Shown here: piece by piece, positions 9,416 through 64,000 of the stretch | How positions within the stretch are numbered: position 1 is the first letter of the stretch | How the letters are laid out: each line of letters opens with the position of its first letter | Assembly (NCBI RefSeq): GCF_016432865.1 | Contig: NC_067399.1 | Coordinates: forward strand, 45,012,001-45,076,000 | DNA from: Antechinus flavipes | Lineage: Eukaryota | Length of the DNA stretch: 64,000 bases | Reading direction: 5' to 3' | The notes under the pieces: generated by a model | The model's input: only the letters and a program-made list of their open reading frames with translations | Database searches by the model: none | What the model was told of the DNA's origin: nothing | Program-made: the position numbers and the translations under genes

Positions 9416-9558
9416 NNNNNNNNNNNNNNNNNNNNNNNNNNNNNNNNNNNNNNNNNNNNNNNNNNNNNNNNNNNNNNNNNNNNNNNNNNNNNNNNNNNNN
9501 NNNNNNNNNNNNNNNNNNNNNNNNNNNNNNNNNNNNNNNNNNNNNNNNNNNNNNNNNN
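9416..9558. other. Assembly gap (143 N) between HP and TXNL4B
   Basis: Run of n in the sequence. Confidence 1.
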
Positions 9559-15747: not shown

Positions 15748-36131
<20,384 letters not shown>

Positions 36132-45922: not shown

Positions 45923-46662
45923 CTACTCCCTCATTGATCAAATGAGATAATATATGTAAAGTACATTGCAACTCTTAAAGCATTATAAATGTGACCTGTT
46001 TACTAGTATTGTGATTTTAAAAGCAAAGTGCATACTTGCTACTCTTCTCTATAATTCTTCCTTTTCTCCTGTGATACCTTGACCCTTTTCTCTAGCTTCA
46101 TTGACTATCTTTTAATTCTTCTAAAAAATTTCTCTCTTGCAAATAAAAATGGGGCAAGTTTAGTTGGAAAAGAAATGATCTTGGTTTTCCTTTTCCTTTC
46201 TTCCTCATTTTAGAAATTAGGGTTGGTAACTATCTACTTCCACTCTTATCCATTTCCCCTTTGACTTCCATGTTTAAAAACAACCAGCAAATAATTAGCC
46301 ATTGCCACATGTAACTAAAATAGGGTTAGGAAAGGCCATGATTGGGAATTGGCTTGGGGAATTCTACTAAAGTAGTCGATCAATTATCAATATTAAAACC
46401 CTCCCTATATAAAGAAAGAAGCTGACTATCTTTGAGTCATTAATTGAGATGTATAAGTGAAACCCTGAATTGACAAGTGACTAGATAGGGGTGAATGATG
46501 ACCAAGAAGCCTAGAAAGGAGCTTGGTCATAGGATTTGAGGTATTACTTATTTACTGGGTAGTGGTACATCTATGACAAAGGATGGGTGACCTTCAATAT
46601 ACAATCATTGCTCAGAGCTGTTCCTCTTTCCCACCATTTGTGGTGCTCTTGGATCTGCTCAC

Positions 46663-46770
46663 CTTTTCTACCTGCTCTTGGATCTTTTCAACAGCACAAA
46701 GCTTTCTTGAAGGTGAATCACATTGCTGAGTCTCAGCCTCAGGTTCATTTAATTTGTCCTTTTTTGACTC
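46663..46770 (-). CDS. Repeat exon A (108 nt, open; weak AAG acceptor): ESKKDKLNEPEAETQQCDSPSRKLCAVEKIQEQVEK
   Basis: Open phase-0 frame and GTGAGC donor; the consensus TAG acceptor is mutated to TCA, so an upstream AAG is assumed. Confidence 0.35.
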
Positions 46771-47382
46771 CTTATTGAAGGAAAAAAGAATCCAGACATC
46801 AGGAATATCTGCCACCCCACATGTTCACACCTATCGCTCAGACACACAGTTTCATACTTCGTCTTGTGATGTGTGCCTGTTCTCATCAATCTCTCTCCTC
46901 TTCTATAAACTCTTATAAAGAAAATGGGAGTGAGTTTGCACACTGTCTTGATATATTTTTTTTTTGCTCACTTTTTCACTTACAAACTAAGGAGGGTAGG
47001 TAGCCAGCCTACTGCCCTCCACTGTCACACATTTCTCCTTTGGTTTTCAGTTCTCAACCAATCAGCTAGTTAACTAACCTCATATAGGAGGTGGGAAGAG
47101 GTGCCAAGGTGCAGGTGATTTGGGACTCTTATGAAATGTATGTTTTTAAAAGTGCTCAAAATGGAGAAAGAAGTGAACTTCGCTTCAATAAATGTGACAT
47201 GAAAGTAAAGTGGGTTTGGTAGGAAGATAGACAGGTTTGGATGTTGATTGGGAAGGATTTTCGATATAGCCTCTTACTGGGGAATGAAATCTGTGTGAAA
47301 AAGGATGGATATCTAGATTATAGAATGACAATCCAGGACTGTCCATTTCCCCCACCATTTTGCTGCTCTTCACTCTACTTAC

Positions 47383-47519
47383 CTTTTCTGCCGGCTGAAG
47401 GCTCTTCTTCTCAGCTGAACTGTGTCTTCTTGTAGGTGAGTCCTGTTGCAACGAATAATATCATATATCTTATCCCTGAGACTCTGGCTGTCCTCCTTGG
47501 GCTCATGGAAGCTGTCCTT
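47383..47519 (-). pseudogene. Repeat exon B, disabled
   Basis: A +2 nt frameshift (atatatga), and the pyrimidine tract upstream of the acceptor is deleted. Confidence 0.6.
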
Positions 47520-47813
47520 CTGCTTGCCCCATACATCAGTAATTATTTGTCACCTTAAGTGCTTACTCCTAGCACCCTGGGGCACGATCCCACACTTCAT
47601 TCATCCTGTGCTTTGTGGCCTTTTCTCATCAAGATCCTTCCTACAAATTCTTGCAATGAAAATTATGTGAGTTTGGGTGGAAAACAGCCTGTCATGTCTT
47701 TCTTTTTGCTCACTGTCTCCATCAAATAATAGGAATAAGGGTAGAATATAGGAAATAGAATTAGAATTAGAAATAGGAATAATTTAGGTGGGCTGCTCTT
47801 GGCTCTAGCTCAC

Positions 47814-47948
47814 CCTTTCTGCCTGCTGTTGGATGGTCTTCTCAGCAGAACTATGTCGTCTTGTGGGTGGTTCCCATTGTGATGGATAACAGTGCATCTT
47901 CTGGATACTCTGCTTGTAATCTTCGGGCTCACAGCATCGATCCTTCTC
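47814..47948 (-). CDS. Repeat exon C (135 nt, open): EKDRCCEPEDYKQSIQKMHCYPSQWEPPTRRHSSAEKTIQQQAER
   Basis: caagtag acceptor, GTGAGC donor, 45 codons with no stop. Confidence 0.55.
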
Positions 47949-48340
47949 CTACTTGTCATTGAAGAAAAGCTCCGGATAGTCAAGAATTACCTTCCACCTA
48001 AAACAGCCCATCCCCAACACCCCGAGTCCTACACACTGTCCTGTAATGTCTTGACCTATTCTCCTCCATCTCCTTGGCTGCTTCTACTATTCTCTTATAA
48101 AGCAAATGGGAGTGAGTTTGGTTGAAAAACTGTCTTGACTTTCTTTCCCCTTATGTACATAATAGGAATGAGTGTAGGGAATTCCTTGCCTCCTATTCCC
48201 CCCATTTCTCCTTTGATTTTCAGCTCTAAAACAACTAAGCAACTAACCAGTTAGCCAATCTCAAGTAGGAGATGGGAAAAGGTCATGTCAAGACCCAGGT
48301 AATTTGGGGCTCCATATATAATCTTTATTATTATTATTAT

Positions 48341-48455
48341 TTGCTGAGGCAATTGGGGTTAAGTGACTTGCCCAGGGTCACATAGCCAGGAAATGTTAAG
48401 TGTCTGAGGCCAGATTTGAACTCAGCTTCTCCTGACTTCAGGGCTGGTGCTCTGT
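48341..48455 (-). mobile_element. WSINE1-like SINE (5'-truncated) in an array intron
   Basis: ttgctgaggcaattggggttaagtgacttgcccagggtcaca...gatttgaactcag...cagggctggtgctct, with a (TTA)n tail and ctttattatt repeated on both sides. Confidence 0.8.
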
Positions 48456-48725
48456 AACCTTTATTATTAAAAGTCTCTCCTACATGGAGAAAACATTACC
48501 TTTGCCTTGGTGAATATGACTAAAGTCAGATTTCATTCACTTTGGTAGGACAGATAGAGATGAATGGTGACCAAGAAGCTTAAGAGTGAGCTTAGTCATA
48601 TATTTGAGGCTGGTTACACATTGCTGAGAGATACCTCTGTGACAAAGGATAGGTATCTAGTTTGCAGAATGACTCTCTAAACATAGCTGCTTCCCCACCA
48701 TTAAAGTGTTTTTGGATCTGCTCAC

Positions 48726-48854
48726 CTTTTCTGCCTGCTGTTGGAGCATCTTCTCAGGAGTGCTGAGTCTTCTTGTAGAGTCCCATTGTGATGAATAACA
48801 GTGTGACTTACACTGTACAATCTGGTTCTCATCCTCGTCATCATATGATTTGTC
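48726..48854 (-). CDS. Repeat exon D (129 nt, open): DKSYDDEDENQIVQCKSHCYSSQWDSTRRLSTPEKMLQQQAEK
   Basis: gaatag acceptor, GTGAGC donor, 43 codons. Confidence 0.5.
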
Positions 48855-49067
48855 CTATTCCTCATTTAAAAATAAAGTCACATACTTCAGGAATTAACTG
48901 CCACCTAAGTTGCTCACACCCATGGCTCTGAGCCACAGCCTCATACTTCAACCTTCTTGGCCTATTCTCATCAATCTCTTTGACCACTACAAACTCTGAC
49001 ATAGAAAACTGAATAGTGTTTATTTGGAAAAGTTTCTCAACTTTTTTTTTTTCTTTTCTAATTTTTT

Positions 49068-49203
49068 GGCTGAGCAATTGGGGTTAAGTGATTTGCCCAG
49101 GATCACACACAGCTAGGAAGTGTTAAGTGTTCTGAGGTCAGATTTGAACTCAGGACTTCCTGACAGGGCTGGTACTCCATCTACTGTGTCACCTAGCTGC
49201 CCC
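49068..49203 (-). mobile_element. WSINE1-like SINE in an array intron
   Basis: gctgagcaattggggttaagtgatttgcccagg...gatttgaactcagg...cacctagctgcccc, preceded by a T-rich tail. Confidence 0.8.
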
Positions 49204-49656
49204 TTTAACTTTCTTTAAAAAATTTTTTATTTCCTTATTCACTTTGTAGAAAACAGGGTTTGGTAGTCTTCTGCCCTCCACTCCCCCTGATTTCTATTTG
49301 GGATTCCAGATCTAAAACAACCAGCAATCAACAAGTTAGTCAGCCTCAAACAATAAGTGGGAAAAGATGGTGCAAAGCACCAGGGCCCTGGGAGTTACTA
49401 TGCTCTGTATTTTAAAGCACTCTTCTTATAGGGTAAAAATATTGACATCACTCAGTGTGTGTGACATGAAAACGAAACGTGGTTTTAGTAGAATAAGTAA
49501 GGTTGGAAACATGAGATTGGTGTCAAAGGATTTTAGGTATTTGCCACTTACTGAAGAATGATAGCTCTGTGACAAAGGAAAGATGTCTAGATTACAGAAT
49601 GAATTTTCTGAGCTCTCCCATTTCCCCACTATTTTGATGCTCTTGGCTCTGCTCAC

Positions 49657-49788
49657 CTTTTCTGCTTGCTGAAGGATCTTCTCAGCACAACTGTGTCCTC
49701 TTGTAGGTGAGTCCTGTTGTGATGGATAACAGTGCCTCTTATCTCTGAGACTCAGGGTGTCCTCCTCGGGCTCATAAAATCTGTCCAC
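49657..49788 (-). CDS. Repeat exon E (132 nt, open): VDRFYEPEEDTLSLRDKRHCYPSQQDSPTRGHSCAEKILQQAEK
   Basis: gagcag acceptor, GTGAGC donor, 44 codons. Confidence 0.55.
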
Positions 49789-50283
49789 CTGCTCATCATT
49801 GAAGAACAAAGCCTCAGACACATCAGGCATTAGTTGCCATTTTGAATGCTCATCCCTAACACCTGAGGCTCAATCCCACACTTAGACTTCTTGGCCTGTT
49901 CTTATTAATCTATTTGACTTCTCTAAACTCTTTAATAAATAACTGGAGTGAGTTTATAAAACTGTTGTGACTTTTGTTTAACTTTCTCATTCTTATTATA
50001 GGAACAAGTATAGGTAGCCTCCTGCCCTCCACACCCACCGGTTTCTATTTTGATTTCCAGATCCAAACAGCAATCAAGAAGTTAGCCAAACTCAAATAGG
50101 AAGTAAAAAGGCGTGTAAAGCTCCAGGTGGTTTTATGCTTTTTGATTTGGATTTGTTATTTTATAATTCTCTAGATTGTAAAAGTCTTGATCTTTGTCAA
50201 CATGACAGGTGGTCTAGATTACAGAATAGCTGTTCAGATCTGTTCCCTGTTTCTGCAATTGAGTTGCTCTTGGGTCTGCTCAC

Positions 50284-50418
50284 CTTTTCTGCCTGCTGAA
50301 GGGTCTTCTCAACAGTACTGAGACTTCTAGAAGATGACTCCCGTGGCAGTAGATAATGTTGTATCTTATCCCAGAAATTCATGCTGTCATTTTTGGACCC
50401 ATAGTAACTATCCTCCTC
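50284..50418 (-). CDS. Repeat exon F (135 nt, open): EEDSYYGSKNDSMNFWDKIQHYLLPRESSSRSLSTVEKTLQQAEK
   Basis: caagtag acceptor, GTGAGC donor, 45 codons. Confidence 0.55.
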
Positions 50419-51028
50419 CTACTTGTCATTGAAGAACAAAGCCTCAGACATCAGAAATTATCCACTACCTAAAATGCTCACCCCCTCCCCCCGCCCCCAG
50501 CACCCTGAGGCACAGTCCCACACTTCATTCTGTGATGTGTTTGCCCTTTTTTTTTTTTTTTTTTTTTTAAAACGAAGTCTTGCAAAGAAAGTGGAAGTGA
50601 GTTTGGTTGGAAAACTGACTCTTGAAGACTTTTTCTAATTTCCTCATCCCTGTGGAGCAGTGGGAATAGGCAGCCTCATGGTCTCCACTCCCACTCATTT
50701 TCTCCTTTGGTTGTCAGCTCTAATACAACTAGGTAACCAACTAGGTAGGTTGAAAGAGCAAGTATGAAAAGCTGGTGCAAAAGTCCAGGTGAAAATACTG
50801 ACCATTGCCTTAGTGAGTGTGACACAGAAGTAATATCTGGCATTGGTGGAGAGATAAGTCAGGTTGGATGTTCACCAGGAAAGGTAGGAGGGAGCTTGGT
50901 CGTAGGATTTTAGATTTAGTCACTAACTGGGGAACAACAGGTGTATGACAGGATTGTCTAGATTTCATGACGATTCAGAGTTTTCCTTCCCCTTTCTCCA
51001 CCATTTTGGTGTTCTTGGCTCTGCTCAC

Positions 51029-51163
51029 CTTTTCTGCCTTCTGAAGGATCATCTTTTCAGCAAGACTAAGTCTTCTTGTAGATGAGTCCCGTTCCAATGG
51101 ATAGCATTGACTCTTATCTCTGAGAATCAAGCTGTCATCCTCAGACTCAGAGGATATATTTTC
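51029..51163 (-). CDS. Repeat exon G (135 nt, open): ENISSESEDDSLILRDKSQCYPLERDSSTRRLSLAEKMILQKAEK
   Basis: gaatag acceptor, GTGAGC donor, 45 codons. Confidence 0.55.
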
Positions 51164-51812
51164 CTATTCATCATGGAAAAACAAAGTCCCAGACAGCAGC
51201 ACTTACCTGCCAGCTAAAATTTTCACCTCCCCCCAATATCTTGAGCTACAGAGCCCCATACTTGATTCTGTGACTTCCTTGGCCTGTTCTCATTAGTCTC
51301 TTTGGTTTCTTGTACAAACTCTTACAAAGAAAATGGGAGGGCGTTTAGCCAGAAAATTGACTGTTTTTCTTTTTCCAAAATCCTTACATAAAGAGTTGAA
51401 GGAAAGAAAGTAGGTAGTAAGCCTCCTTTTCTCCTTTGATATTCAGTTCCTAACCATGTAACTAACAGGTAATGAACCTCAAATAGGAAGTAGGAAAAGA
51501 TGTGGCAAACATCCAGGTGATCTGGCACTCTTATTTTAGAGCTCTGTATTTTAAAACACTCTCCCTGCATGGTAAAGGTACTCACCATTGCCTCAGGGAG
51601 AGTGACATGGAAGCAAAACCTGGATTTGGGAAGAGGATAAATTAGGTTGGATGATGACCAGGAAGCCTATGAGACTGGTCACAGGATTTTAGGTGTTAAT
51701 TACTCACAGAAGAATGATAGCTCTGTGATAAAGGATAGATGTCTAAATTACAGAATAAGTGTTTAGAGCTTTGTCCTTTCCCAACTATTGTGGGGCTTTT
51801 GGCTCTACTTAC

Positions 51813-51935
51813 CCTTTCTGCCTCCATAAGAATCTTCTTCTCAGCAGAACTGAGTTTTCTGGAAAATAAGTCCTGTGGCAATGGATAATATTGTGTCTTA
51901 TCCCTGAGAATCAGTTTGTCCTCCTTGGCCACATA
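51813..51935 (-). pseudogene. Repeat exon H, acceptor deleted
   Basis: The remaining frame is open and the donor is GTAAGT, but the pyrimidine tract, AG and first codons are deleted and I found no phase-0 AG nearby. Confidence 0.5.
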
Positions 51936-52529
51936 GGTTGATATCCCAGATATCAGGAATTACCCACTACCTAAAATGGTCACCCCCAGCACCCTGAGGC
52001 ACAGTCCCACACTTCATTCTGTGATGTGTTTGCCCTTTTCTTACCAGGTCTTGCAAAGAAAGTGGAAGTGAGTTTGGTTGGAAAACTGACTGCCTTGATT
52101 TTTTCTAATTTCCTCATCCCTGTGGAGCAGTGGGAATAGGCAGCCTCATGGCCTTTACTCCCACCAAGCTCTAATACAACTAGGAAACCAACTAGGTAGC
52201 CCAGTTGAAAGAGCAAGTATGAAAAGCTAGTGCAAAAGTCCAGGTACTTGTTACTATATTTGGGTCTGACATTCTCCTGACATTGTGAAAACATTGACCA
52301 TTGGCGCCTCAGTGAGTGAGACACAGAGGTAATATGTAGTGGGGAGACAAGTCAGGTTGGATGCTCACCAGGAAAGGTAGGAGGGAGCTTAGTATAGGAT
52401 TTTAGGTTTAAGTCACTGACTGGGTAATGACAGGTGTATGATGGGATGGGTGTCTAGATTACAGAGTGACTGTTCAGAGCTTTCTCCTTTTTACCCCCAT
52501 TTTGGTGATCATCTTTTTTGTCTGCTCAC

Positions 52530-52667
52530 CTTTTTTGCCTGCTGAAGGATTTTCTTCTCAGCAGCACTAAGTTTTCTTGTAGATGAGTCCCGTTCCAATA
52601 GATAGTATTGCATTTTATTTCTGAGAATCAGGTTGTCATCCTCGGGCTCATTGGATCTATCCTTCTC
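52530..52667 (-). CDS. Repeat exon I (138 nt, open): EKDRSNEPEDDNLILRNKMQYYLLERDSSTRKLSAAEKKILQQAKK
   Basis: gagtag acceptor, GTGAGC donor, 46 codons. Confidence 0.55.
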
Positions 52668-52791
52668 CTACTCATCATGGAATAACAAAGTCCCAGACAT
52701 TCCAAGTTACCTGCCAGCTTAAATTCTCACCCTCCCAATATCCTGAGCTATAGCCCCAAAACTTCATTCTACGACTTTTTGACTTATTCTC

Positions 52792-53483
52792 TTTTTAATA
52801 ATTTTTTATTTCTTTTTTCTGGTTATACATATATTAACTTTTTTTTTTTTTTTTAAATACACATTTTTAATGAGTTATGTTGGGAGAGAAAAATAAAGTG
52901 AAAAACCATGAGAGAAAAAAAACAGAAAAAAGAAGTGAATGTAGTATGTATTGATTTACATTCAATATCCGTAGTTCTTTTTATGGATGCAGATGGAGTT
53001 TTCTCTCTAAAGTTTGTTGGAATTGGCTTGAATCATTAAAGCACTGAGAAGAATCAAGTCTTTCATAGTTGATCATCACACAATCTTGCTGTTACTATGT
53101 ACAATGTAGTCCTGGTTCTGCTTGTTTTGCTCAGTATCAGTTCATGTAAATCTTTTCCAGGCCTTTCTAAAATCATCCTGTTCATCATTTTTTTTTTTTT
53201 TTAACAAAACAATGATAATCCATTACCTTCATATGCCACAACTTAATCATTACCCACTTGATGGGCATCTACTCATTTTCCAATTCTTTGCTACCTTAAA
53301 GAGAGCTGCTACAAAACTTTTTGCATTTTTACCCTCTATTATGATTTCCTTGGGATACAGACCCAGTAACAACACTGTTGTGTCAAAGGCATGCAGAGTT
53401 TTATAGCTCTTTGGGCATAGTTCCAGATTGCTCTTCAGAATGGTTGGATCATTTCACAGCTCCCCCAACAAATGCATTAGAGT
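52792..53483 (-). mobile_element. 5'-truncated L1 3' end inserted into one array unit, with a 19-bp TSD
   Basis: T-rich tail at the left end and marsupial L1 3' sequence (gggcatctactcattttccaattctttgc...gttccagattgctcttcagaatggttggatc). TSD gactttttgacttattctc (52773-52791) versus gactttttaacttattctc (53484-53502). Confidence 0.85.
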
Positions 53484-53919
53484 GACTTTTTAACTTATTC
53501 TCATCAGTTTCTTTGATCTTTGTACCAACTCTTGCAAAGAAAATGGGAGGGGGTTTAGCAGAAAATTGACTATTTTTCCAAAATCCTTACATATAGAGTT
53601 GAGGAAGGAAAAGTAGGTAGTTAGCCTCCTTTTCTCCACTCCCACCCATTTCTCCTTTGGTATTCAATTCTTAAACAAGTAACCAATAGGTAATGGAACC
53701 TGAAATAAGAAGCAAAACCTGGATTTGGGAAGAGGATAAGTGAAGGTTGGATGATGACCAGGAAGCCTATGAGAGAGCCTGGTCATAGGATTTTAGGTGT
53801 TAACTACTTACTGGAGAATGATATTCTCTATGACAAAGGATAGATGTCTAGATTACAGAATGAGTGTTTAGAGCTTTGCCCTTTCTCCCCACCATTGTGG
53901 TGCTTTTGGCTCTACTTAC

Positions 53920-54059
53920 CTTTTTTGTATGCTTAAAAATCTTCTTCTCAGCAATACTGAATTTTCTGGAAATTAAGTCCTGTAGCAATGAATAATATTG
54001 TGTCTTATCCCTGAGAATGAAGTTGTCTCATCCTTGGCCATATAGGAATTATCCTTCTC
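53920..54059 (-). pseudogene. Repeat exon J, disabled
   Basis: Acceptor TAG changed to TAA and a +2 nt insertion (gatgagacaac), giving 140 nt. Confidence 0.6.
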
Positions 54060-54657
54060 TTACTTGTCATTGAAGAACAAAGCCCCAGACATCAGGAATT
54101 GCCCACTATCTAAAATGCTCAACCTCCTCCCCCCCAACACCCTGAGGCACAGTCCCACACTTCATTCTGTGATGTGTTTGCCCTTTTCTTACCAGGTCTT
54201 GCAAAGAAAGTGGAAGTGAGTTTGGTTGGAAAACTGACTGCCTTGACTTTTTCTAATTTCCTCATCCCTGTGGAGCAGTGGGAATAGGCAGCCTCATGGC
54301 CTCCACTCCCACTCATTTTCTCCTTTGGTTGTCAGCTCTAATACAACTAGGTAACCAACTAGGTAGCCAAGTTGAAAGAGCAAATATGAAAAGCTGGTGC
54401 AAAAGTCCAGGTGAAAAAACTGACCATTGTGCCTCAGTGAGTATGACACAGAAGTAATATCTGGCATTGGTGAAGAGATAAGTCAGGTTTGGCTGTTCAC
54501 CAGGAAAGGTAGGAGGGAGCTTGGTCATAGGATTTTAGGTTTAAGCAACTGACTGGGGAATGTCAAGTGTATGATGGGATGGGTGTCTAGATTAAAGAGT
54601 GACTGTTCAGAGCTTTGTCCTTTTTATCCCCATTTTGGTGATCTTAGGTCTGCTCAC

Positions 54658-54759
54658 CTTTTCTGGCTGCTGAAGCATCATCTTCTCAGGAGCACTAAGT
54701 GTTCTTGTACATGAGTCCTGTTGCACTGGATAATATTCGTGCTTTTTCGATCTGTCCCC
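54658..54759 (-). CDS. Repeat exon K (102 nt, open, in-frame 36-nt deletion): GDRSKKHEYYPVQQDSCTRTLSAPEKMMLQQPEK
   Basis: gaatag acceptor, GTGAGC donor, 34 codons. Confidence 0.5.
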
Positions 54760-55027
54760 CTATTCATCATTCAAGAAACAAAATTCCAGATGACAGTTAA
54801 CTTACGGCTTCAGTGCTCACCATCAAAGCCCTGAGCCATAGTCCCACCCTTCATCCTGTAATTTAAGTAAGATTTGATAATGACCGAGAAGGCTATGAGT
54901 GAGCTTGGTCATAGGATTTTTAGGTATTAACTGCTGAAGAATGATAGCTCTGTGATAAAGGACAAATGTCCAGATTACAGAATGAGTGTTCATAGCTTTC
55001 CCCTTTGCTCACCACTTTGGTGCTCAC

Positions 55028-55165
55028 CTTTTCTATTTGCTGAAGGATGATTTTCTCAGTAGCACTAAGTCTTCTTGTAGATGAGCCCCGTTGCAATGAA
55101 TAGTATTGTATCTTATCCCTGACAATAAGGTTGTCATCCTCGGACTCAGAGGATCGGTCTTCCTC
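55028..55165 (-). CDS. Repeat exon L (138 nt, open): EEDRSSESEDDNLIVRDKIQYYSLQRGSSTRRLSATEKIILQQIEK
   Basis: gagtag acceptor, GTGAGC donor, 46 codons. Confidence 0.55.
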
Positions 55166-55837
55166 CTACTCATCATGGAAGAACAAAGTCCCAGATATTC
55201 AGGACTTACCTGCAAGTTGAAATTCTTACTCCTCCCCGCCCCCCCCCCCCCCCCCCCCCATACCCTGAGCCATAGTCCTAAACTTCATCCTGTGATTTCT
55301 TAGCCTGTTCTTACCAGTCTTTCTGATCTCTGGTACAAACACTAAAAAAAGAACTGGGAGTAAGTGGTTGAAAAAGTGACTCTTCACTTTTCCCAAATTT
55401 CTTCCTTTACCAAAGAATGGCCAGAGTAGGTAGCCTCATGTCCTTCACTTGCATCCAGTTCTCTCTTGTTTTTCAGCTCTAAAATAACCACGTAATAGAT
55501 AGCTAATCTCAAAGAAGTGGAAAAATGGTGGTTCAAAGGTCCAGGTGATTTAATGCTCCTGTTTTAGGACTTTTTTATTTTCAAAGCCTTTCCTACCTTT
55601 TGAAAGGATTGACCATTTCCCTCAGTGAGAATGACATGGAAGCGAAACTCACATTTGGTAGGAAAATAAGTAATGTTGGGTGATAAGCAGAAAGCCAAGG
55701 AGTGAGCTTGGTCATAAAATATTAGGTGTTAGCTACTTAATAAGAATGATAATTCTGTAATAAAGGATAATTGCCTAGATTATAAAATGACTGTTCAAGC
55801 TATGCCCTTTCCCACTATTGTGGTGCTCTTTGCTCAC

Positions 55838-55970
55838 CTTTTCTGCCTCTACAAGGGTCTTCTTCTCAGGTACACTAAGTCTTCTTGTGGATAAGTCCTG
55901 TTGCAATGGGGAATTGTGTCAAATCTCTGAGAATCAGGTTGTCATCTTTAGAGTCTTAGGATCTATCCTT
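55838..55970 (-). pseudogene. Repeat exon M, disabled
   Basis: In-frame TAA at 55958-55956 plus a -2 frameshift (133 nt). Confidence 0.65.
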
Positions 55971-56525
55971 CTACTCATTATGGAAGAACAAAGTCCCAGA
56001 CATCAGCTGTTACCTGTCAGCTAAAATCCTTCCTTCCTTCCTTCATCTCTAAATACCCTGAGCTATAGTGCCATATTCTGTGACTTTTTGCCCTATTCTC
56101 ATCAATCTGTTTTGACCTTTTCTACAAACACTTGCAAAGAAAATGGGAGTAAGTTTGACTGAGAAATGAACTGTTTTGAGTTTCTTTTTCCAAATTTCCT
56201 TACTCATTGAAGAGCAGTGAAAGTAGGTACTTCTCATGCCTTTCATCCTTACCTATTTCTCCTTTGGTTTTCAGTTCTAAAACGACTGTTTTAGTAATGA
56301 ACTAGGTAACTAAACTCAAGGAAGAAGTATGAAAAGCTGGTGTGAAGGTCCCGATGGTTGCGTTTTCCTATATATGGACTCTCACACTCTTCTTACATGG
56401 TGAAAATATTGACCATTTCCCTCAATGGGTGTGACGTGGAAATAGTACTTGGCATTGGTGGGAGATAGGAAAGATTGTTTCCTGTTTATCAAGAAAAGTA
56501 GAAGTGAGTTTGGTCATAGGATTTT

Positions 56526-57159
56526 AGGTTTTAGCCACTGATTGGGGAATGATAGCTGTATAATAGGATGGTATCTAGAATATATAAGAACTGTTCAGAG
56601 CTTTACCCTCCCCCCATTGGCTTATCACCCAACATTACTTATTTTCCTACCAAATGTGAGTTTCGCTTCCATGTCATTCTCACTGAGGGCAATGGTCAAT
56701 CCTTTCAAAAGGTAGGAAAGGCTTTGAAAATAAAAAAGTCCTAAAACAGGAGCATTAAATCACCTGGACCTTTGAACCACCATTTTTCCACTTCTTCTTT
56801 GAGATTAGCTATCTATTACGTGGTTATTTTAGAGCTGAAAAACAAGAGAGAACTGGATGCAAGTGAAGGACATGAGGCTACCTACTCTGGCCATTCTTTG
56901 GTAAAGGAAGAAATTTGGGAAAAGTGAAGAGTCACTTCAGGTTTTAGCCACTGATTGGGGAATGATAGCTGTATAATAGGATGGTATCTAGAATATATAA
57001 GAACTGTTCAAAGCTTTACCCTCCCCCTCCATTGCAACAGGACTTATCCACAAGAAGACTTAGTGTACCTGAGAAGAAGACCCTTGTAGAGGCAGAAAAG
57101 GTGAGCAAAGAGCACCACAATAGTGGGAAAGGGCATAGCTTGAACAGTCATTTTATAAT
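56526..57159. repeat. Complex local rearrangement: direct duplication 56526-56619/56939-57034 plus two inverted templated copies (56620-56937 of 55374-55688; 57029-57159 of 55779-55909)
   Basis: The inverted segments are near-identical reverse complements of their sources by eye. The first differs by a 3-bp indel and one substitution, and I saw no difference in the second. Confidence 0.85.
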
Positions 57160-57177
57160 GCTCTTGGGTCTGCTCAC

Positions 57178-57315
57178 CTTTTCTGCCTGCTGGAGGATCT
57201 TCTTCTCAGCAGCACTAAGTTTTCTTATAGATGAGCCCCGTCGAAATGAAGAGGATGGAGTCTTATCCTTGACAATGAGGTGGTCATCTTCGGATTCAGA
57301 GGATTGGTCCTCCTC
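57178..57315 (-). CDS. Repeat exon N (138 nt, open): EEDQSSESEDDHLIVKDKTPSSSFRRGSSIRKLSAAEKKILQQAEK
   Basis: gagtag acceptor, GTGAGC donor, 46 codons. Confidence 0.55.
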
Positions 57316-57845
57316 CTACTCATCATGGAAGAACAAAGTAGACATCAGAACTTATTGTCAGCTAAAATTCTTACCCTCAATATCCTGAGCTATAGTCCTA
57401 CACTTCCATCCTGTGACTTTTGGGCCTGTTTTCATCAATCTCTTTGATCTTTGGTACAAACACTAGCAAAAATGAGTGGTTGGAAAAGCGACTTCACTTT
57501 TCCAAAATTTCTTCCTTTACCAAAGAATGGCCAGAATGCCCTTTATTTCTACCCATTTCTCTTTTGATCTTCAGCTCTAAAATAACTAAGTAACTAAGCT
57601 ACCTTTGAAAGTATTTACCATTGTCCTCAGTGAGAGTGACATGGAAGTGAAACTCACATTTGGTAGGAGGATCAGTGATGTTGGATGATGAACAGAAAGC
57701 CAAGGAGTGAGCTTGGTCATAAGATATTGGGTATTAATTACTTAATAGAAGATCTTAGCTCTGTGATAAAGGATAATTGCCTCAGTTACAGAATGACTGT
57801 TCAGAGCTGTGCTCTTTCCCCACTATTGTGGTGTTCTTTGCTCAC

Positions 57846-57982
57846 CTTTTCAGTTTGTGGAAGGCTCCTCTTCTTAGGTGCACTAAGTCTTCTTATTGAT
57901 GAGTCCTGTTGCAATGGAGAATTGTGTCTTATCCCTGAAAATCAGGTTGTCATCCTTAAGAGTCTTAGGATCTATCCTTTTC
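57846..57982 (-). pseudogene. Repeat exon O, disabled
   Basis: Same in-frame TAA as copy M (57967-57965) plus frameshifts (137 nt). Confidence 0.65.
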
Positions 57983-58607
57983 CTACTCATCATGGAAGAA
58001 CTAAGTCCCAGACATCAGCTGTTACCTGTCAGCTAAAATTCTCCATTCCTTCTCCCTAATACCCTGAACCATAGTCCCACACCTTTATTTTGTGACTTTT
58101 TGGCCTATTCTCCTGAATTTCTTTGATCTTTTCTACAGACACTTGCAAAGAAAATGGGAGTGGGTTTGGCTGAGACATGGACTGTTTTGACTTTTTCCAA
58201 ACTTCCCAACTTATTGAGATTAGGTACCTTCATGCCTTCCACCCTCACCCATTTCTCCTTCAGTTCTAAGACAATTAAGTAACCAACTAAGTAGCTAAAC
58301 TCAAAGAGGAAGTATGAAAAGCTGGTATGATGGTCCAAGTGGTTGGGTATATTTGGGCTCTCACTCTCTCCCTACATGGTGAAAATATTGATCACTGCCT
58401 CAGTAGGTGTGACATGGAAGTAAAACTTGGCATTGGTGGGAGATAAATAAGAGGTTGGTTATTCACTAGGAAATGTAGGAAGGAGCTTTCTCATAAGATT
58501 TTAGGATTTAGCCACTGATTGGGGAATGACAGATGTATGACAGATTACAGAAGACTGTTCAGAGCTTTCTACTTTCCCCACCATTTTGTGCTCTTGGGTT
58601 AGCTCAC

Positions 58608-58745
58608 CTTTTCTGCCTGCTGAAGGGTCCTCCTCTCAGGAGCACTAAATTTTCTTGATGATGAGCGCCGTAGATAGGGACAGCATGAGGTCTTATCCCT
58701 GACAATCACTTTGTCATCCTCAGAGTCAGAGGATCGGTCTTCCTC
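58608..58745 (-). CDS. Repeat exon P (138 nt, open): EEDRSSDSEDDKVIVRDKTSCCPYLRRSSSRKFSAPERRTLQQAEK
   Basis: gagtag acceptor, GTGAGC donor, 46 codons. Confidence 0.55.
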
Positions 58746-59383
58746 CTACTCAGAATGGAAGAACAAAGTCCCAGACACCACCAGTTACCTGCCAGCTAAA
58801 ATTCTCACACCCCTCCCCCCCTAATACCCTGAGCCATGGTCCTATACTTTATCCTCTGACTTCTTGACCTGTTTTCATCAGTTTCTTTATCTTTTGTACA
58901 AACTCTTGCAAAAAAAAAATGGAAATGAGTTTGATTGGAAAAGTGACTTCATTTTCTTTTTCAAAATTTCTCCCTTCACCAATGAGTAGTGAGAGTTAGG
59001 TATCCTTATGTGGTCTTCACTTCTACCAGCTCTAAAATAATCAAGGAATCAACAAGGTAGCCAACCTTAAAGAAGAAGTGGGAAAATTTGATTTAGGTGG
59101 TTTGATGCTCCTGTTTTAGGGCCCAGTATTTTCAAACATTTTCCCTATCTTTTGAAAGTATTGACCATTCCCCCCTCAGTGATTGTGACATGGAAGTCAA
59201 ACTTAGATTTGGTAGGAGGATAAGTAATGTTGGATGATGAAAAGAAAGTCAAGGAATGGGCTTGGCCATAAGATATTAGTAGTTAGCTACTTAATAATGA
59301 TAGCTCTGTGATAAAGGATAATTGTCTAGATTAGAGAGCTGTGTTCTTTCCTTACTATTGTGATGCTCTTGGGTCTGGCTCAC

Positions 59384-59503
59384 CTTTTCTGCCTGCTGGA
59401 GGATCTTCCTCTCAGCAGCACTAAGTCTTCTTGTAAATAAGCAGGATGGGGTTTTATCCCTGACAATGAGGTTGTCATCTTCAGACTCAGAGGATTGGTC
59501 CTC
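59384..59503 (-). CDS. Repeat exon Q (120 nt, open): EDQSSESEDDNLIVRDKTPSCLFTRRLSAAERKILQQAEK
   Basis: Acceptor shifted by 3 nt (gagtaatag), GTGAGC donor, 40 codons. Confidence 0.5.
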
Positions 59504-60171
59504 CTATTACTCATCATGGAAGAACAAAGTCCCAGACATCAGGACTTATCTGCTAGTTGAAATTCTCACCCCCCTCCCCAAAATCCTGAGCCATAGTTCT
59601 ATACTTCATACTGTGACTTCTTGACTTGTTTTCATCAATCTCTTTATCTCCTGTACAAACTCTTGCAAAGAAAATGGGAATCAGTTTGATTGGAAAAGTG
59701 ACTATCTTCATTTTCTTTCCCCATATTTCTTCCTTTACCAATGAATGATCAGAGTAGGTAGTCTCATGCCCTTCACATCCACCCGTTTCTCTCTTGTTTT
59801 TCAGCTCTAAAATAATCAAAGAACCAACCAAGTAGACAACCTCAAAGAGGAAGTGGGGAAATGTGGTTCAAAGGTCCAGTTGGTTTGATGCTCCTGCTTT
59901 AGGAGTCTTTATTTTCAAACATCCTCTTTACCTTTTGAAAGTTTTGACCATTGCCCTGAGTGAGAGTGACATGGAAGTGAAACTTGGATTTGGTAGGAGG
60001 ACAATTAATGTTGAATGATGAGCAGAAAGCCAAGGAGTGAGCTTGGTCATATTAGTTGTTAGCTACTTACTAGGGAATCTTAGCTCTGTGATAAAAGAAT
60101 AGATGTCTAGATTACAGAATGGCTGTTAAGAGCTGTGCCCTTTCCCCACTATTGTGTTGCTCTTGGCTCAC

Positions 60172-60303
60172 CTTTTTTGCTTGTGGAAGGCTCTTCTTAC
60201 GTGCACTAAGTCTTCTTTTGGGTGATTCCTGTTGCAATGGATAATATTTTGTCTTATTCCTGAAAACTAGGTTTTTATCCTCTGCTTTATAGTAGCTATT
60301 CTT
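60172..60303 (-). CDS. Repeat exon R (132 nt, open): KNSYYKAEDKNLVFRNKTKYYPLQQESPKRRLSARKKSLPQAKK
   Basis: gaatag acceptor, GTGAGC donor, 44 codons. Confidence 0.5.
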
Positions 60304-60411
60304 CTATTCATTATGGAAGAATAAAGTCCCAGACTTCAGCTATTATCTGTCAACTAAAATTCTCACTCTCCACACTTGAGCCACAGTCCCACACTTCATT
60401 CTGTGACTTTT

Positions 60412-60537
60412 TGGGGTTAAGTGACTTGCCCAGGATCACACGGCTAGGAAGTGTTAATTGTCTGAGGCAGGATTTGAACTCAGGTCCTCCTGACTTCAGG
60501 GCTAGTACTCTATCCACTGTACCAGGTAGCTGTCCCC
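60412..60537 (-). mobile_element. WSINE1-like SINE (tail lost) in an array intron
   Basis: tggggttaagtgacttgcccaggatcacacggctaggaagtgttaa...gatttgaactcaggtcctcctgacttcagggct...gtagctgtcccc. Confidence 0.8.
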
Positions 60538-60940
60538 TACAAATACTTTAAAAGAAAATGGGAATGGGTTTGGCTGAGGAAAGGACTGTCTTAACTTCTT
60601 TTCCCCAAGTTTCCTAACTCACTGAGAGAGTACAGGTACCCTCAACTGACTATGTAGCCAAGCTTAGGGAGGAAGTATGAAAAGTTGGTGTGAAGGTCCA
60701 GGTGGTTGGGTATTCCCATATATGGGCTCCCTCACTCTCCCTACATGATGAAAATAATGACCATTTCCCTCAATGGGTGTGATGTGGAAATAGTACAAAG
60801 CAACAAGTACTAGGGAAAGGTAGTAAGGAGGCTAGTCTAGAGAATGGCAAATATATGACTGGATAGATGTCTAGATTACAGGAGGACTATTCAGAGCTTC
60901 ACCCTTTCTCCACCACTTTGGTGCTCCTGGCTCTGCTCAC

Positions 60941-61075
60941 CTTTTCTGCTTGCTGAAGGATGATCCTTCTCTCAGGAGCACTAAGTCTTCTTGATGATGA
61001 GCCCCGTGGAAAGGGACAGTATGAGGTCTTGTCCCTGATAATCACGTTGTCATCCTCGGACTCAGAGAATCTGTC
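60941..61075 (-). CDS. Repeat exon S (135 nt, open): DRFSESEDDNVIIRDKTSYCPFPRGSSSRRLSAPERRIILQQAEK
   Basis: gagtag acceptor, GTGAGC donor, 45 codons. Confidence 0.55.
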
Positions 61076-61727
61076 CTACTCATCACGGAAAAACAAAGTC
61101 CCAGACATCACCAGTTACCTGCCAGCTAAAATTCTCACCCCCTAATACCCTGAGCCACAGCCCCACACTTCATCCTGTGACTTCTTGACTTGTTTTCACC
61201 AATCTCCTTGATCTCTTGTACAAACTCTTGCAAAGAAAATGAGAATGAGTTTGGCTGGAAAAATGATGGTCTTCACCTTCTTTTCCCAAATTTCTCCCTT
61301 TAGCAATGAGTTGTGAGAGCAGGTATCCTCGTGTGCCCTTCACTTCCACCCATTTCTCTTTTGTTTTTCAGCTCTAAAATAACCAAGGAACCAACTAGGT
61401 AGCCAAGAGGAAGTGGGAGAATTTGGTTCAAAGTTCCAGGTGGTTTGATGCTCCTGTTTTAGGACTCTATTTTTTTCAAACACCTTCCCTACCTTTTCAA
61501 AGTTTTGACTGTTGCCCTCAGTGAGTGTGACATGGAAATGAAATTCGGATTTGGTAGGAGGGTAAGTAATGTATGATGAGCAGAAAGCCAAGGAGTGAGC
61601 TTGGTCGTAAGATGTGAGTTGTTACTTACTAGAGAATCTTAGTTCTGTGACAAAGGATAGCTGCCTAGATTAAAGAATGACTTTTCAGAGCTGTGCCCTT
61701 TCCCCACTCTTGTGGGTCTCGGCTCAC

Positions 61728-61870
61728 CTTTTCTGCCTATAAGAGGATCTTCTTCTCAGGAGCATTAAGTCTCCTTGTAGATGAATCCTATTGCAATGGA
61801 TAATATTGTGTCTTATTCCTAAGAAGTAGGCTGTTCTCTTGGCCCCATAGGATCTATCTTCCTCCTCCTC
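61728..61870 (-). pseudogene. Repeat exon T, disabled
   Basis: No YAG acceptor and two in-frame TAG stops (CAA TAG GAT; TTA TAG GCA). Confidence 0.65.
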
Positions 61871-62520
61871 TTCATCATGGCAGAACAAAACCTCAGACTT
61901 TCAGCTATTACTTGTCAGCTAAAATTCTCTTCCTCCTCCTCCCCCAGTACCCTGAACCATAGTCCCACACTTGCATTCTGTGACTTATTGGCTTATTCTT
62001 ATCAATCTTTCTGATCTTTTCTACAAACACCAGCAAAAAAAAAAATTAGTAAGTTTGGCTGAGAAAGGGACTATTTTCACTTTCTCTTTCTCAAATTTCT
62101 TAACTCTTTGAGGAGCAGTGAGAGGAGGTGCTTTCATACCCTCCCTGCCCTCACGCATTTCTCCTTTGGTTTTCAGTTCTAAAACAACTAAGCAACCAAT
62201 TGGGTAGCCAAGCTAAAAGAGGAAGTAAGAAAAGCTGGTGTGAAGGTCCAAGTGGTTGGGTATTCCTATATTTGGGCTCTCACACTCTCCCTACATGGTG
62301 AAAATATTGATCAGTGCGCTTCAGTGGATATGACATGGAAGTAATACTTGACATTGGTGGGAGATAAGTAATGTTGGTTTTCACTAGGAAAGGTAGAAGT
62401 GAACTCGGTCATAGGATTTTAGATTTTAGCCACTGACTGGGGAGTGATAGTTGTATGACAGGATGGGTGCTCAGAGCTTTCTCCTTTCCTCACCACTTTG
62501 GTGCTCCTGGCTCTGCTCAC

Positions 62521-62658
62521 CTTTTCTGCTTGCTGAAGGAGCTTCCTTTCAGGAGAACTAAGTTTTCTTGATGATGAACCTCGTTGAAATGGACAGTCTG
62601 AGGTCTTATCCCTGATAATCATGTTGTCATCCTCGGACTCAGAGGATCTGTCCTCCTC
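62521..62658 (-). CDS. Repeat exon U (138 nt, open): EEDRSSESEDDNMIIRDKTSDCPFQRGSSSRKLSSPERKLLQQAEK
   Basis: gagtag acceptor, GTGAGC donor, 46 codons. Confidence 0.55.
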
Positions 62659-63259
62659 CTACTCATCATGGAAAAACAGAGTCCCAGACATCACCAGTTA
62701 CCTGGCTAGCTAAAATTCTGACCCTCCCAAACCCTGAGCCACAACCCCACACTTCATCCTGTGACTTCTTTATGTATCTTCATCCATCTCTTTGACCTCT
62801 TGTATAAATTCTTTCAAAGAAAGTAGCCATGGGTTTGGCTGAGTAAAGGAGTGTTTTTGACTTTCTTTTAATAGGTAGCCTTGTAGCCTCCTGCTCTCCA
62901 CTCTCCCCCGCTTCTCCTTTGATTTTCAACTCCTTGACAATGAAGCAATCAACCAGGTAATGAACTTCAAATAAGGAAGTGAGAAAAGGTGTTGCAAAGG
63001 TACAGCTGATCTGGTGCTCTTATTTTAGGAAATTGTATTTTAATACACTATACAGTGAAAGTATTGTGCCTCAGATAGTATAACATAGAAGCAAAATCTG
63101 GATTTGCTAGGAGATTAAATAAGATTGGATGATGAAGTTTTAGGTGTTAGCTCCTTACTGGAGAATGATACCTTTGTAATAGAGTACATGCTAGATTATG
63201 AACTGACTTTCAGAGATTTACCCTTTCCCCATCTTTTTGGTGTTCTTGGCTCTACTCAC

Positions 63260-63397
63260 TTTTTCTGCCTGCTTAAGAATCTTTTTCTCAGAAGCACTGA
63301 GTCGTCTTGTAGATGAGTCTCGTTGCAATGGACAGTTTTGTGCTTTATCCCTGAGAATTAGGTTGTCTTCCTCGGACTCAGAGAATCTATCCTCCTC
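63260..63397 (-). CDS. Repeat exon V (138 nt, open; weak GAG acceptor): EEDRFSESEEDNLILRDKAQNCPLQRDSSTRRLSASEKKILKQAEK
   Basis: Open frame and GTGAGT donor; the consensus TAG is absent, leaving only GAG. Confidence 0.4.
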
Positions 63398-64000
63398 CTC
63401 ATCATGGAAGAACAAAGTCCCAGACACATCAGTACTTATCTACTAGCTAAAATTCTCATCCCCCAATACCACAAGCCACAGTCCCACTCTTCATCTTGTG
63501 ACTTCTTGGTCTATTCTCATCAATCTCTTTAATCTCTTGTGCAAACTCTTGCCAAAAATGTTAGGAGTGAATTTTGTTGTAAAGGTAATTGTTTTCACTT
63601 CCTTTTTTCCATATTTCCTCTTTCCTCCAAGAGTGGCCAGAGTAGGGAGGCTTATGTCTTACTTACACTATTTCTCCTTTGGTTTTCAGCTCTAATACAA
63701 CCAAGCAACCAATCAGGTAGCTAACTTCAAAGAGGAAGTTGGGAAAGATGGTGCAAAGATCCAAGTAGTTTGGAGTATTCTTTTAGGACTCTATATTTTC
63801 AAACATCCTCCCTATCTGTTGAAAGTATTGACTTTTTTCCTAAGTGAGTGTGACATGGAAGTAATATCTGCCCTTTGGTGGAAGGATAAGTAAGGTTGTA
63901 TGTCTACCAGGAAACCTAGAAATGAGCTGGGTTATAGGATTTTAGGTTTTAGCCACTGACTGGGGAATGATTGCTCTGTGACCAAAAAATCGATGTCTAG

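Follow-up and report, generated by a model that had tools for sequence, protein, structure and literature searches.

Large in-frame amplifications of tandem exons include the Olduvai/DUF1220 exon doublets of the NBPF genes, the kringle IV-2 units of LPA, and the repeat exons of nebulin and titin. We analysed a stretch of 64,000 nucleotides of the genome of Antechinus flavipes (contig NC_067399.1, positions 45,012,001 to 45,076,000; hereafter the window, in which positions are counted from the first letter), and found on its minus strand a tandem array of at least 23 units of ~0.75 kb, within a gene that is probably PMFBP1. As in NBPF, LPA and nebulin/titin, units of intron plus exon lie head to tail, the phases are symmetric and any copy number is translatable; the array also contains two-unit higher-order blocks, and its copy number is probably variable. 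Unlike these systems, it repeats no folded domain but a short, fast-evolving and probably disordered module of ~46 amino acids (aa); its copies are old (16-37% diverged); forms of 46 and 20 aa appear to coexist by means of an internal acceptor; and it is known here from sequence alone. Mutually exclusive tandem exons (PMC9013439, PMC9741552) share with the array an origin by tandem duplication and homologous exons that each have splice sites of their own. They, however, come in sets of 2-4, in contrast to the at least 23 copies seen here, and the array exons have lengths that are multiples of 3. We regard the array as an instance of the known process of tandem exon duplication (PMC9013439, PMC9741552), which stands out by the number and age of its copies and by its two forms of exon.

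A repeat search of the window returned direct-repeat families of 8-18 members each, ~0.67-0.93 kb apart, which span 46.4-64 kb. Scanning for the reverse-complemented donor motif gave 22 copies in forward orientation, anchored at 46657 to 63254 (copies and units are named here by the donor-motif anchor; anchor 46657, for example, is exon copy 46663-46770); the 22 forward exon-bearing units between 46657 and 64000 are spaced mostly by 0.67-0.93 kb. With one unit as the query, blastn matched every unit at 64-80% identity and gave no match below 46.6 kb. An nhmmer profile of the units recovered all of them (E 1e-29 to 1e-239; E 1e-65 to 1e-239 for the units counted here, which cover the full profile length), and identified positions 45779-46655 as a 23rd full-length unit (E 8.5e-65), the exon of which is 45785-45922. 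No further unit was found by the nhmmer profile or by blastn in window positions 1-45,700. The number of 23 is a lower bound, as the window ends within the 5'-most unit. Tandem Repeats Finder reported no array in the window, but its period is limited to 500, which explains the blank result and means that it is not evidence against the array. The first-pass annotation of this DNA had proposed a tandem amplification of a symmetric phase-0 exon in at least 22 copies, which is borne out by the nhmmer search and the donor scan, and comparison of the window with itself (the direct-repeat families and blastn) confirms that the unit is ~0.75 kb long. The start of the array, which had been put at 46663 with 45922 belonging to the first ordinary exon, needs correction: the array begins at 45779, and 45785-45922 is the exon of its last unit.

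Homologous units of exon and intron that follow one another head to tail are what is expected of a tandem exon-amplification array. On the minus strand, most units have the donor AAG|GTGAGC and three copies have AAG|GTAAGT; all 23 of the 23 forward donors fit 7-9 of the 9 positions of MAG|GTRAGT. The acceptor in most copies is TAG or CAG behind a short pyrimidine tract. The open long-form exons are 102-138 nucleotides (nt) long, every length being a multiple of 3, and are in phase 0-0. Between 46663 and 63397, 16 copies are open and have a usable acceptor, together 2094 nt or 698 aa, which matches the 16 open copies and at least ~690 aa claimed earlier; with the terminal copy included, the 17 open long forms with a usable acceptor amount to 2232 nt or 744 aa. 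Copy 51807 is open but its acceptor is deleted, and the long form is broken in five copies (47377, 53914, 55832, 57840 and 61722). The terminal exon, 45785-45922, has the acceptor GAGTAG|GAG, as in the array copies, and the donor GAG|GTGAGC. An internal acceptor (…TTGCAACAG|GA) is present in nine copies, 57-60 nt ahead of the donor and in phase, as are the short forms behind it; copy 61728-61865 is the only one of all the copies in which the 3' half is closed. Most units also have a conserved TTTTAGCTGGCAG|GTAAC or GTAAGT motif ~40-45 nt upstream of the long-form acceptor (for example at 55203-55211). This motif resembles an acceptor followed 7 nt on by a near-perfect donor, and could be a relic of a splice junction or a decoy.

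Whole units have a nearest-neighbour identity of at most 84% (median 69%), and the copies, at identities of 63-84%, are 16-37% diverged. Assuming ordinary mammalian neutral rates, the duplications would be tens of millions of years old; with units no more than 84% identical, the frames have therefore been open over a long time. We rejected an assembly artefact on the same grounds, since copies so diverged are not collapsed or expanded reads. One place in the array could nevertheless be misassembled. Unit 55832 is overlong owing to inverted pieces 99-100% identical to neighbouring units (56620-57159): positions 56620-56937 are 98.7% identical to the reverse complement of 55374-55688, positions 57029-57159 are 100% identical to the reverse complement of 55779-55909, and 56936-57034 is a 96% direct copy of 56523-56619. 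These pieces stem either from a complex rearrangement of very recent date or from misassembly at this place. To extend this to the whole array, so that the units would be a dispersed repeat, a satellite or an artefact with exon-like features arisen by chance, is in our view barely conceivable: besides their divergence, the units do not recur in the remaining 45.7 kb of the window, they have the exact splice architecture of the terminal exon, and the matches of their peptide profile among 1.84 billion representative proteins are marsupial-derived, apart from two low-complexity chance matches. The units contain no transposon protein domain.

In a tree of the copies, the terminal unit is the most diverged, which makes its exon a plausible candidate for the parent copy. 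It is followed by 46657, which groups with units of L001 (a contig from another data set, described below), and then by the older copies 47377-49651. The tree then has three clades: A, with ten copies that are all open long forms; B, with 55832, 57840, 60166 and 61722; and C, with 50278, 51807 and 53914. Pairs of A with B and of A with C succeed one another along the gene, an order that points to unequal crossing-over of two-unit blocks.

Several properties of the copies bear on their use as exons. Ten of the 16 distinct gap runs within the exon are multiples of 3; for gap runs in the introns on either side the figure is 12 of 66 (Fisher p = 9e-4). As long forms, 17 of the 22 array copies are open, against a neutral expectation of ~40% per copy; neutral substitutions at the observed mean divergence from the consensus (17%) give a probability of 0.24-0.54 per copy of remaining free of stops, and ~6.6 of 17 open copies would be expected to have stayed open. 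The splice sites of clade A diverge 2-6 times less than its introns: between pairs of copies, the 24 nt that precede the acceptor diverge by 0.09 and donor positions +1 to +6 by 0.03, compared with 0.21-0.34 in introns and 0.18-0.22 in the exon. In clades B and C, the region of the upstream acceptor is not conserved (divergence 0.30, with many gaps). Finally, all 12 of the 12 copies in which the internal AG is absent (CGG or TGG) are open over their full length, whereas six of the nine copies with the internal acceptor have a broken 5' half and eight of the nine keep an open 3' half of 20 aa (Fisher p = 0.0015 against the 12 without the acceptor). Such decay is expected if these copies are spliced at the internal acceptor, which would free the 5' half from selection. 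Each of the ~five independent disabling events fell on a lineage that has the internal acceptor.

Splice sites are thus present and constrained and the reading frame is kept, both of which belong to a tandem exon-amplification array. A coding reading of the array on the plus strand was also tried and rejected, as it gave no consistent frame. Taken together, the frame-preserving indels, the retention of open frames, the conserved splice sites and the association of the internal acceptor with decay of the 5' half indicate, at the level of the DNA, that the majority of copies have been retained as exons fit for splicing and translation. From this we infer that the exons would be included in the mature mRNA of Antechinus flavipes and joined to the exons downstream. 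The explanation towards which we lean is an old tandem amplification of a cassette exon with its upstream intron, in the 3' part of a gene that is convergent with DHX38 and would, by position, be PMFBP1.

The consensus repeat peptide is EEDRSSESEDDNLIVRDKTQYYPLQRDSSTRRLSAAEKKILQQAEK. Each module comprises an acidic serine cluster (SESEDD), a YYP core, a near-invariant R-R/K-L-S motif, and a short helix (AEKKILQQAEK). We take the R-R/K-L-S motif to resemble a basophilic-kinase site. In the alignment, the R-R/K-x-S motif and the acidic serine cluster are absent from the terminal exon. Proline occupies module position 25 in 10 of 16 copies. AlphaFold2 modelled a single 46-aa module at a mean predicted local distance difference test (pLDDT) score of 71, which is low confidence, with values above 80 solely in the helix (residues 35-45). 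At the nucleotide level, no part of the exon is better conserved than the purine-rich GAGAAGAAG and ACAAGAAGA tracts. A Pfam scan of the repeat peptide and the downstream exons returned nothing specific.

A profile of 17 of the peptides, run against 1.84 billion representative proteins, gave five matches: two low-complexity chance matches and three from marsupials. Two of the latter (P0001 and P0002) are translated from L001, a 3.2-kb Logan contig of run SRR22536468, which contains four units, two of them open, one with a frameshift and one split by an insertion like a short interspersed element (SINE). The insertion interrupts the fourth repeat exon (L001:3100-3185) and begins GGGGTGGCCAGGTGGCGCAGTGAG…; we presume it to be like the head of a marsupial SINE derived from transfer RNA. 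The third match (P0003, profile E 2.5e-5) is XP_068952627.1, a RefSeq prediction of 76 aa from the sugar glider Petaurus breviceps papuanus, named 'restin homolog isoform X4', and an exact string of 30 aa is common to it and L001. From its start, this protein consists of the end of one repeat exon, a whole repeat exon, and a short form, the start of which coincides exactly with the corresponding internal acceptor in unit 2 of L001 (CCATTGCAG|CAGGAC), after which it reads through into intron. In another marsupial, then, the annotation pipeline joined repeat exons head to tail. The Petaurus protein is like the array in the repeat peptide family, in the head-to-tail joining of exons and in the use of the internal acceptor; unlike the array, it has only 76 aa, ends by intron read-through, and has copies without the SESEDD and RRLS motifs, resembling the older copies at the 3' end of the array in the window. 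Either the array would predate the split of two marsupial lineages, or the two would have a parallel origin. The first-pass claim that the amplification is lineage-specific has to be qualified: the copies are 16-37% diverged and the repeat is also found in sugar glider sequences, so that the amplification would date back tens of millions of years and be common to at least two marsupial lineages.

The order of segments in the Petaurus protein also bears on the number of array exons in a transcript. Tandem exon duplicates are often spliced in a mutually exclusive manner (PMC9013439, PMC9741552), and if each transcript contained one or very few of the array exons, providing many alternative 46-aa segments without any long insert, the frames of the copies would show the same traces of selection. 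In mutually exclusive sets, the use of exactly one exon per transcript is enforced by the frame, by spliceosome incompatibility or by competing RNA pairing. With exon lengths that are multiples of 3, however, the frame of the array enforces no such choice, and the sugar glider model joins three consecutive segments derived from the repeat. Exclusive or near-exclusive choice is thus very unlikely; serial inclusion is more likely, since a related RefSeq model joins several copies in series.

Other observations weigh against serial use of the exons within a long PMFBP1 protein. The copies are kin by descent, so that the p-values above are optimistic and overstate the independence of the copies, the lesions amounting to ~five independent events. 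Substitutions in the exon are about as frequent as in introns. In a conservation profile with 30-nt windows, exon and intron have a similar identity, and the contrast between them is confined to the splice sites, the phase of indels and the comparison within clades. The ratio of nonsynonymous to synonymous differences per site (pN/pS) is 0.52-0.63 in the coding frame, marginally below the 0.69-0.92 of the two control frames; for nine clade A copies it is 0.52 (95% confidence interval 0.32-0.83), with bootstrap probabilities of 0.04 and 0.10 of reaching the control frames. Amino-acid constraint on the repeat exons is therefore weak. In the best-conserved codons the nucleotides themselves are invariant (AGA in 17 of 17 copies, AGT in 15 of 17), which fits the role of a splicing enhancer as well as that of a protein motif. 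The frameshifted clade B copies 55832 and 57840 keep their upstream TAG acceptor, the use of which would poison the frame. The peptide profile found no long protein with many repeats among the 1.84 billion, meaning that annotated marsupial PMFBP1 models with the array either are absent from that protein library or do not exist. XP_068952627.1 is named for restin rather than PMFBP1 and ends in a retained intron. Word-index homology searches with that protein, an 87-aa frame of the downstream exons and the repeat alignment added nothing; as their length filter (0.55-1.75x) excludes full-length PMFBP1, these blanks carry no information about it.

The weak amino-acid constraint, the similar substitution rates of exon and intron, the missing annotated proteins with repeats, and the loss of the long form in five of 22 copies, with a sixth lacking its acceptor, are what would be seen in a decaying relic, in which the exons were amplified and perhaps once used, but are now skipped as intronic pseudo-exons with leftover open frames. 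We consider such a relic improbable, because all 12 copies without an internal acceptor are open despite a divergence of 16-37%, indels in the exon are skewed to multiples of 3, the clade A splice sites are 2-6 times more conserved than the introns, and a spliced model exists in the sugar glider.

It is also possible, if rather unlikely, that the array exons are in transcripts of their own, from a separate gene or as alternative 3' isoforms, which start upstream of the array or within it and terminate within it. In that case the exons would be spliced together and perhaps translated, and the PMFBP1 scaffold would not be lengthened. The Petaurus protein would suit this explanation, with its 76 aa, its start within a repeat exon, its end reading into an intron of the array and a name other than PMFBP1, as would the lack of a long multi-repeat protein in the library searched. 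On the other hand, the array directly adjoins the exons downstream, which are on its strand and include its last unit, the common phase 0-0 means that read-through splicing would be in frame, and the name 'restin homolog' suggests that longer coiled-coil isoforms may exist in the sugar glider.

The identity of this gene was approached through its neighbour and its downstream exons. The plus-strand gene of the window is DHX38/PRP16, as its product matches human PRP16 residues 541-610 with E 2e-36, compared with 3e-26 for DHX8. The human locus listing places DHX38 and PMFBP1 together, and the position of the array gene, convergent with DHX38, is the one expected of PMFBP1; in human the two genes presumably lie tail to tail. 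The minus-strand gene ends at ~40 kb, and the array precedes only ~five further candidate coding exons, three of which (159, 159 and 168 nt) are coiled-coil-like and all in phase 0-0. As far as the window extends, the array would thus lie in the 3' part of the gene, and the earlier placement in the middle of the protein finds no support in it. Symmetric exons, of which this whole part seems to consist, may have made exon amplification easier to tolerate. From synteny with convergent DHX38 and the coiled-coil-like downstream exons, the minus-strand gene is probably PMFBP1. The array gene is like known PMFBP1 genes in being next to DHX38, on the opposite strand and convergent, and in having coiled-coil-like downstream exons in phase 0-0 and a coiled-coil-like terminal array exon; it is unlike them in its repeat, no such repeat of human or mouse PMFBP1 being described in the literature searched, where we also found no paper that links PMFBP1 with marsupials or with such a repeat. 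In the Atlas look-alike search, the downstream exons met generic coiled-coil clusters only.

The features are listed in Table 1. Unit 52524 is 1.39 kb long owing to an insertion of ~690 nt, which we take to be a fragment of a LINE-1 3' end. A run of ~24 G (C on the plus strand) at 55236-55260 on the minus strand, within the unit 55022 intron, resembles a homopolymer of variable length, and shorter G runs occur at the equivalent position of other units. The intron just downstream of the terminal array exon contains an (AC)n microsatellite of ~20 units at 45194-45238. A run of 143 N at window positions 9416-9558 is a gap or masked sequence.

Table 1. Features of the array and its surroundings in the window (open and broken refer to the reading frame of the long form unless stated).
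Feature	Positions	Strand	Remarks
Whole tandem array	45779-64000	-	at least 23 forward ~0.75-kb units, each intron plus one exon; runs past window end
Exon of terminal, most diverged unit	45785-45922	-	138 nt, open, TAG acceptor, GAG|GTGAGC donor; coiled-coil-like peptide without proline
Exon copy	46663-46770	-	108 nt, open; 30 nt net in-frame deletion; old type, nearest to sugar glider copies
Exon copy, short form	47383-47442	-	long form broken (upstream acceptor deleted, stops); 60-nt form behind internal CAG open; GTAAGT donor
Exon copy	47814-47948	-	135 nt, open; without internal acceptor
Exon copy	48726-48854	-	129 nt, open; without internal acceptor
Exon copy	49657-49791	-	135 nt, open; also in-phase internal acceptor, would give 57-nt short form
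Exon copy, clade C	50284-50418	-	135 nt, open; without internal acceptor
Exon copy, clade A	51029-51163	-	135 nt, open
Exon copy, clade C, short form	51813-51872	-	34-nt deletion took upstream acceptor; 60-nt form behind internal CAG open; GTAAGT donor
Exon copy, clade A	52530-52667	-	138 nt, open
Insertion with A-rich tail in intron of unit 52524	52792-53482	-	~690 nt; blastn, nhmmer
Exon copy, clade C, short form	53920-53979	-	long form +2 frameshift, TAG acceptor changed to TAA; 60-nt form open; GTAAGT donor
Exon copy	54658-54759	-	102 nt, open; 36-nt in-frame deletion; internal acceptor present
Exon copy, clade A, reference copy	55028-55165	-	138 nt, open
Exon copy, clade B, short form	55838-55897	-	long form -2 frameshift, common with copy 57840; 60-nt form open
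Inverted pieces of neighbouring units within array	56620-57159	+	blastn, nhmmer, pairwise identity
Exon copy, clade A	57178-57315	-	138 nt, open
Exon copy, clade B, short form	57846-57905	-	long form frameshifted; 60-nt form open
Exon copy, clade A	58608-58745	-	138 nt, open
Exon copy, clade A	59384-59503	-	120 nt, open; 15-nt in-frame deletion
Exon copy, clade B	60172-60303	-	132 nt, open; also internal acceptor, would give 57-nt short form
Exon copy, clade A	60941-61075	-	135 nt, open
Exon copy, clade B, dead in both halves	61728-61865	-	two in-frame TAG stops, 1-nt deletion; upstream end approximate
Exon copy, clade A	62521-62658	-	138 nt, open
Exon copy	63260-63397	-	138 nt, open; TAG acceptor changed to GAG; donor AAA|GTGAGT
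Candidate downstream coding exons of array gene	40894-44571	-	44413-44571 (159 nt), 43310-43468 (159 nt), 42748-42915 (168 nt), ~40894-40987; seen as open frames and splice motifs only
DHX38/PRP16 exons, convergent with array gene	24480-33038	+	helicase motif I exon at 24.5 kb; C-terminal exons ~30969-33038

In the explanation that we favour, the at least 23 units would have come about by unequal crossing-over, in part between blocks of two units (A-C and A-B dimers). Exons that are multiples of 3 and in phase 0-0 could be spliced in series at any copy number with the frame intact, and strong donors with moderate acceptors would define them as cassettes, probably aided by the purine-rich GAGAAGAAG and ACAAGAAGA tracts. 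Two forms of exon would result: a long form of 102-138 nt (~46 aa), which would use the upstream TAG or CAG acceptor, and a short form of 57-60 nt (~20 aa), which would use the in-phase internal CAG acceptor. The acceptor offered by each copy would set the alternation of long and short modules, and in copies with the internal acceptor loss of the 5' half would be tolerated. Translated together, the exons would yield a long series of charged, serine-rich, fast-evolving and largely non-coiled modules, and the repeat segment may act as a flexible, phosphorylatable spacer between coiled-coil segments of a scaffold of the sperm neck.

Among the genes that cause acephalic sperm in men, PMFBP1 is one of the main two; how it acts, at the molecular level, in the head-tail coupling apparatus is still poorly defined (PMC12539209), and its part in sperm head-tail coupling is of clinical interest (PMC12539209, PMC8363609). 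In marsupials the connecting piece of the sperm is articulated and unusually long, and the head rotates on it as the sperm matures (PMC8812575). It is tempting to speculate, although we hold this to be distinctly doubtful, that in marsupial PMFBP1 at least 23 serially spliced exons form a spacer of at least 700-1000 aa, phosphorylatable at its R-R/K-x-S motifs and acidic serine clusters, and that this spacer is part of the articulated connecting piece that lets the head rotate. If so, differences between species in copy number or exon choice would tune the length or flexibility of the neck.

If transcripts skip the array, it would be merely an old intronic curiosity. The locus nonetheless makes the evolution of a large exon array visible in one place, with blocks of dimers, copies that arise and decay, and the change from a long to a short exon by way of an internal acceptor. 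If the exons are spliced into the marsupial protein, they would provide a natural experiment, in which the same scaffold has acquired a very long, modular and probably flexible insert; this would link protein architecture to neck mechanics, and offer a testable candidate for a marsupial-specific sperm trait.

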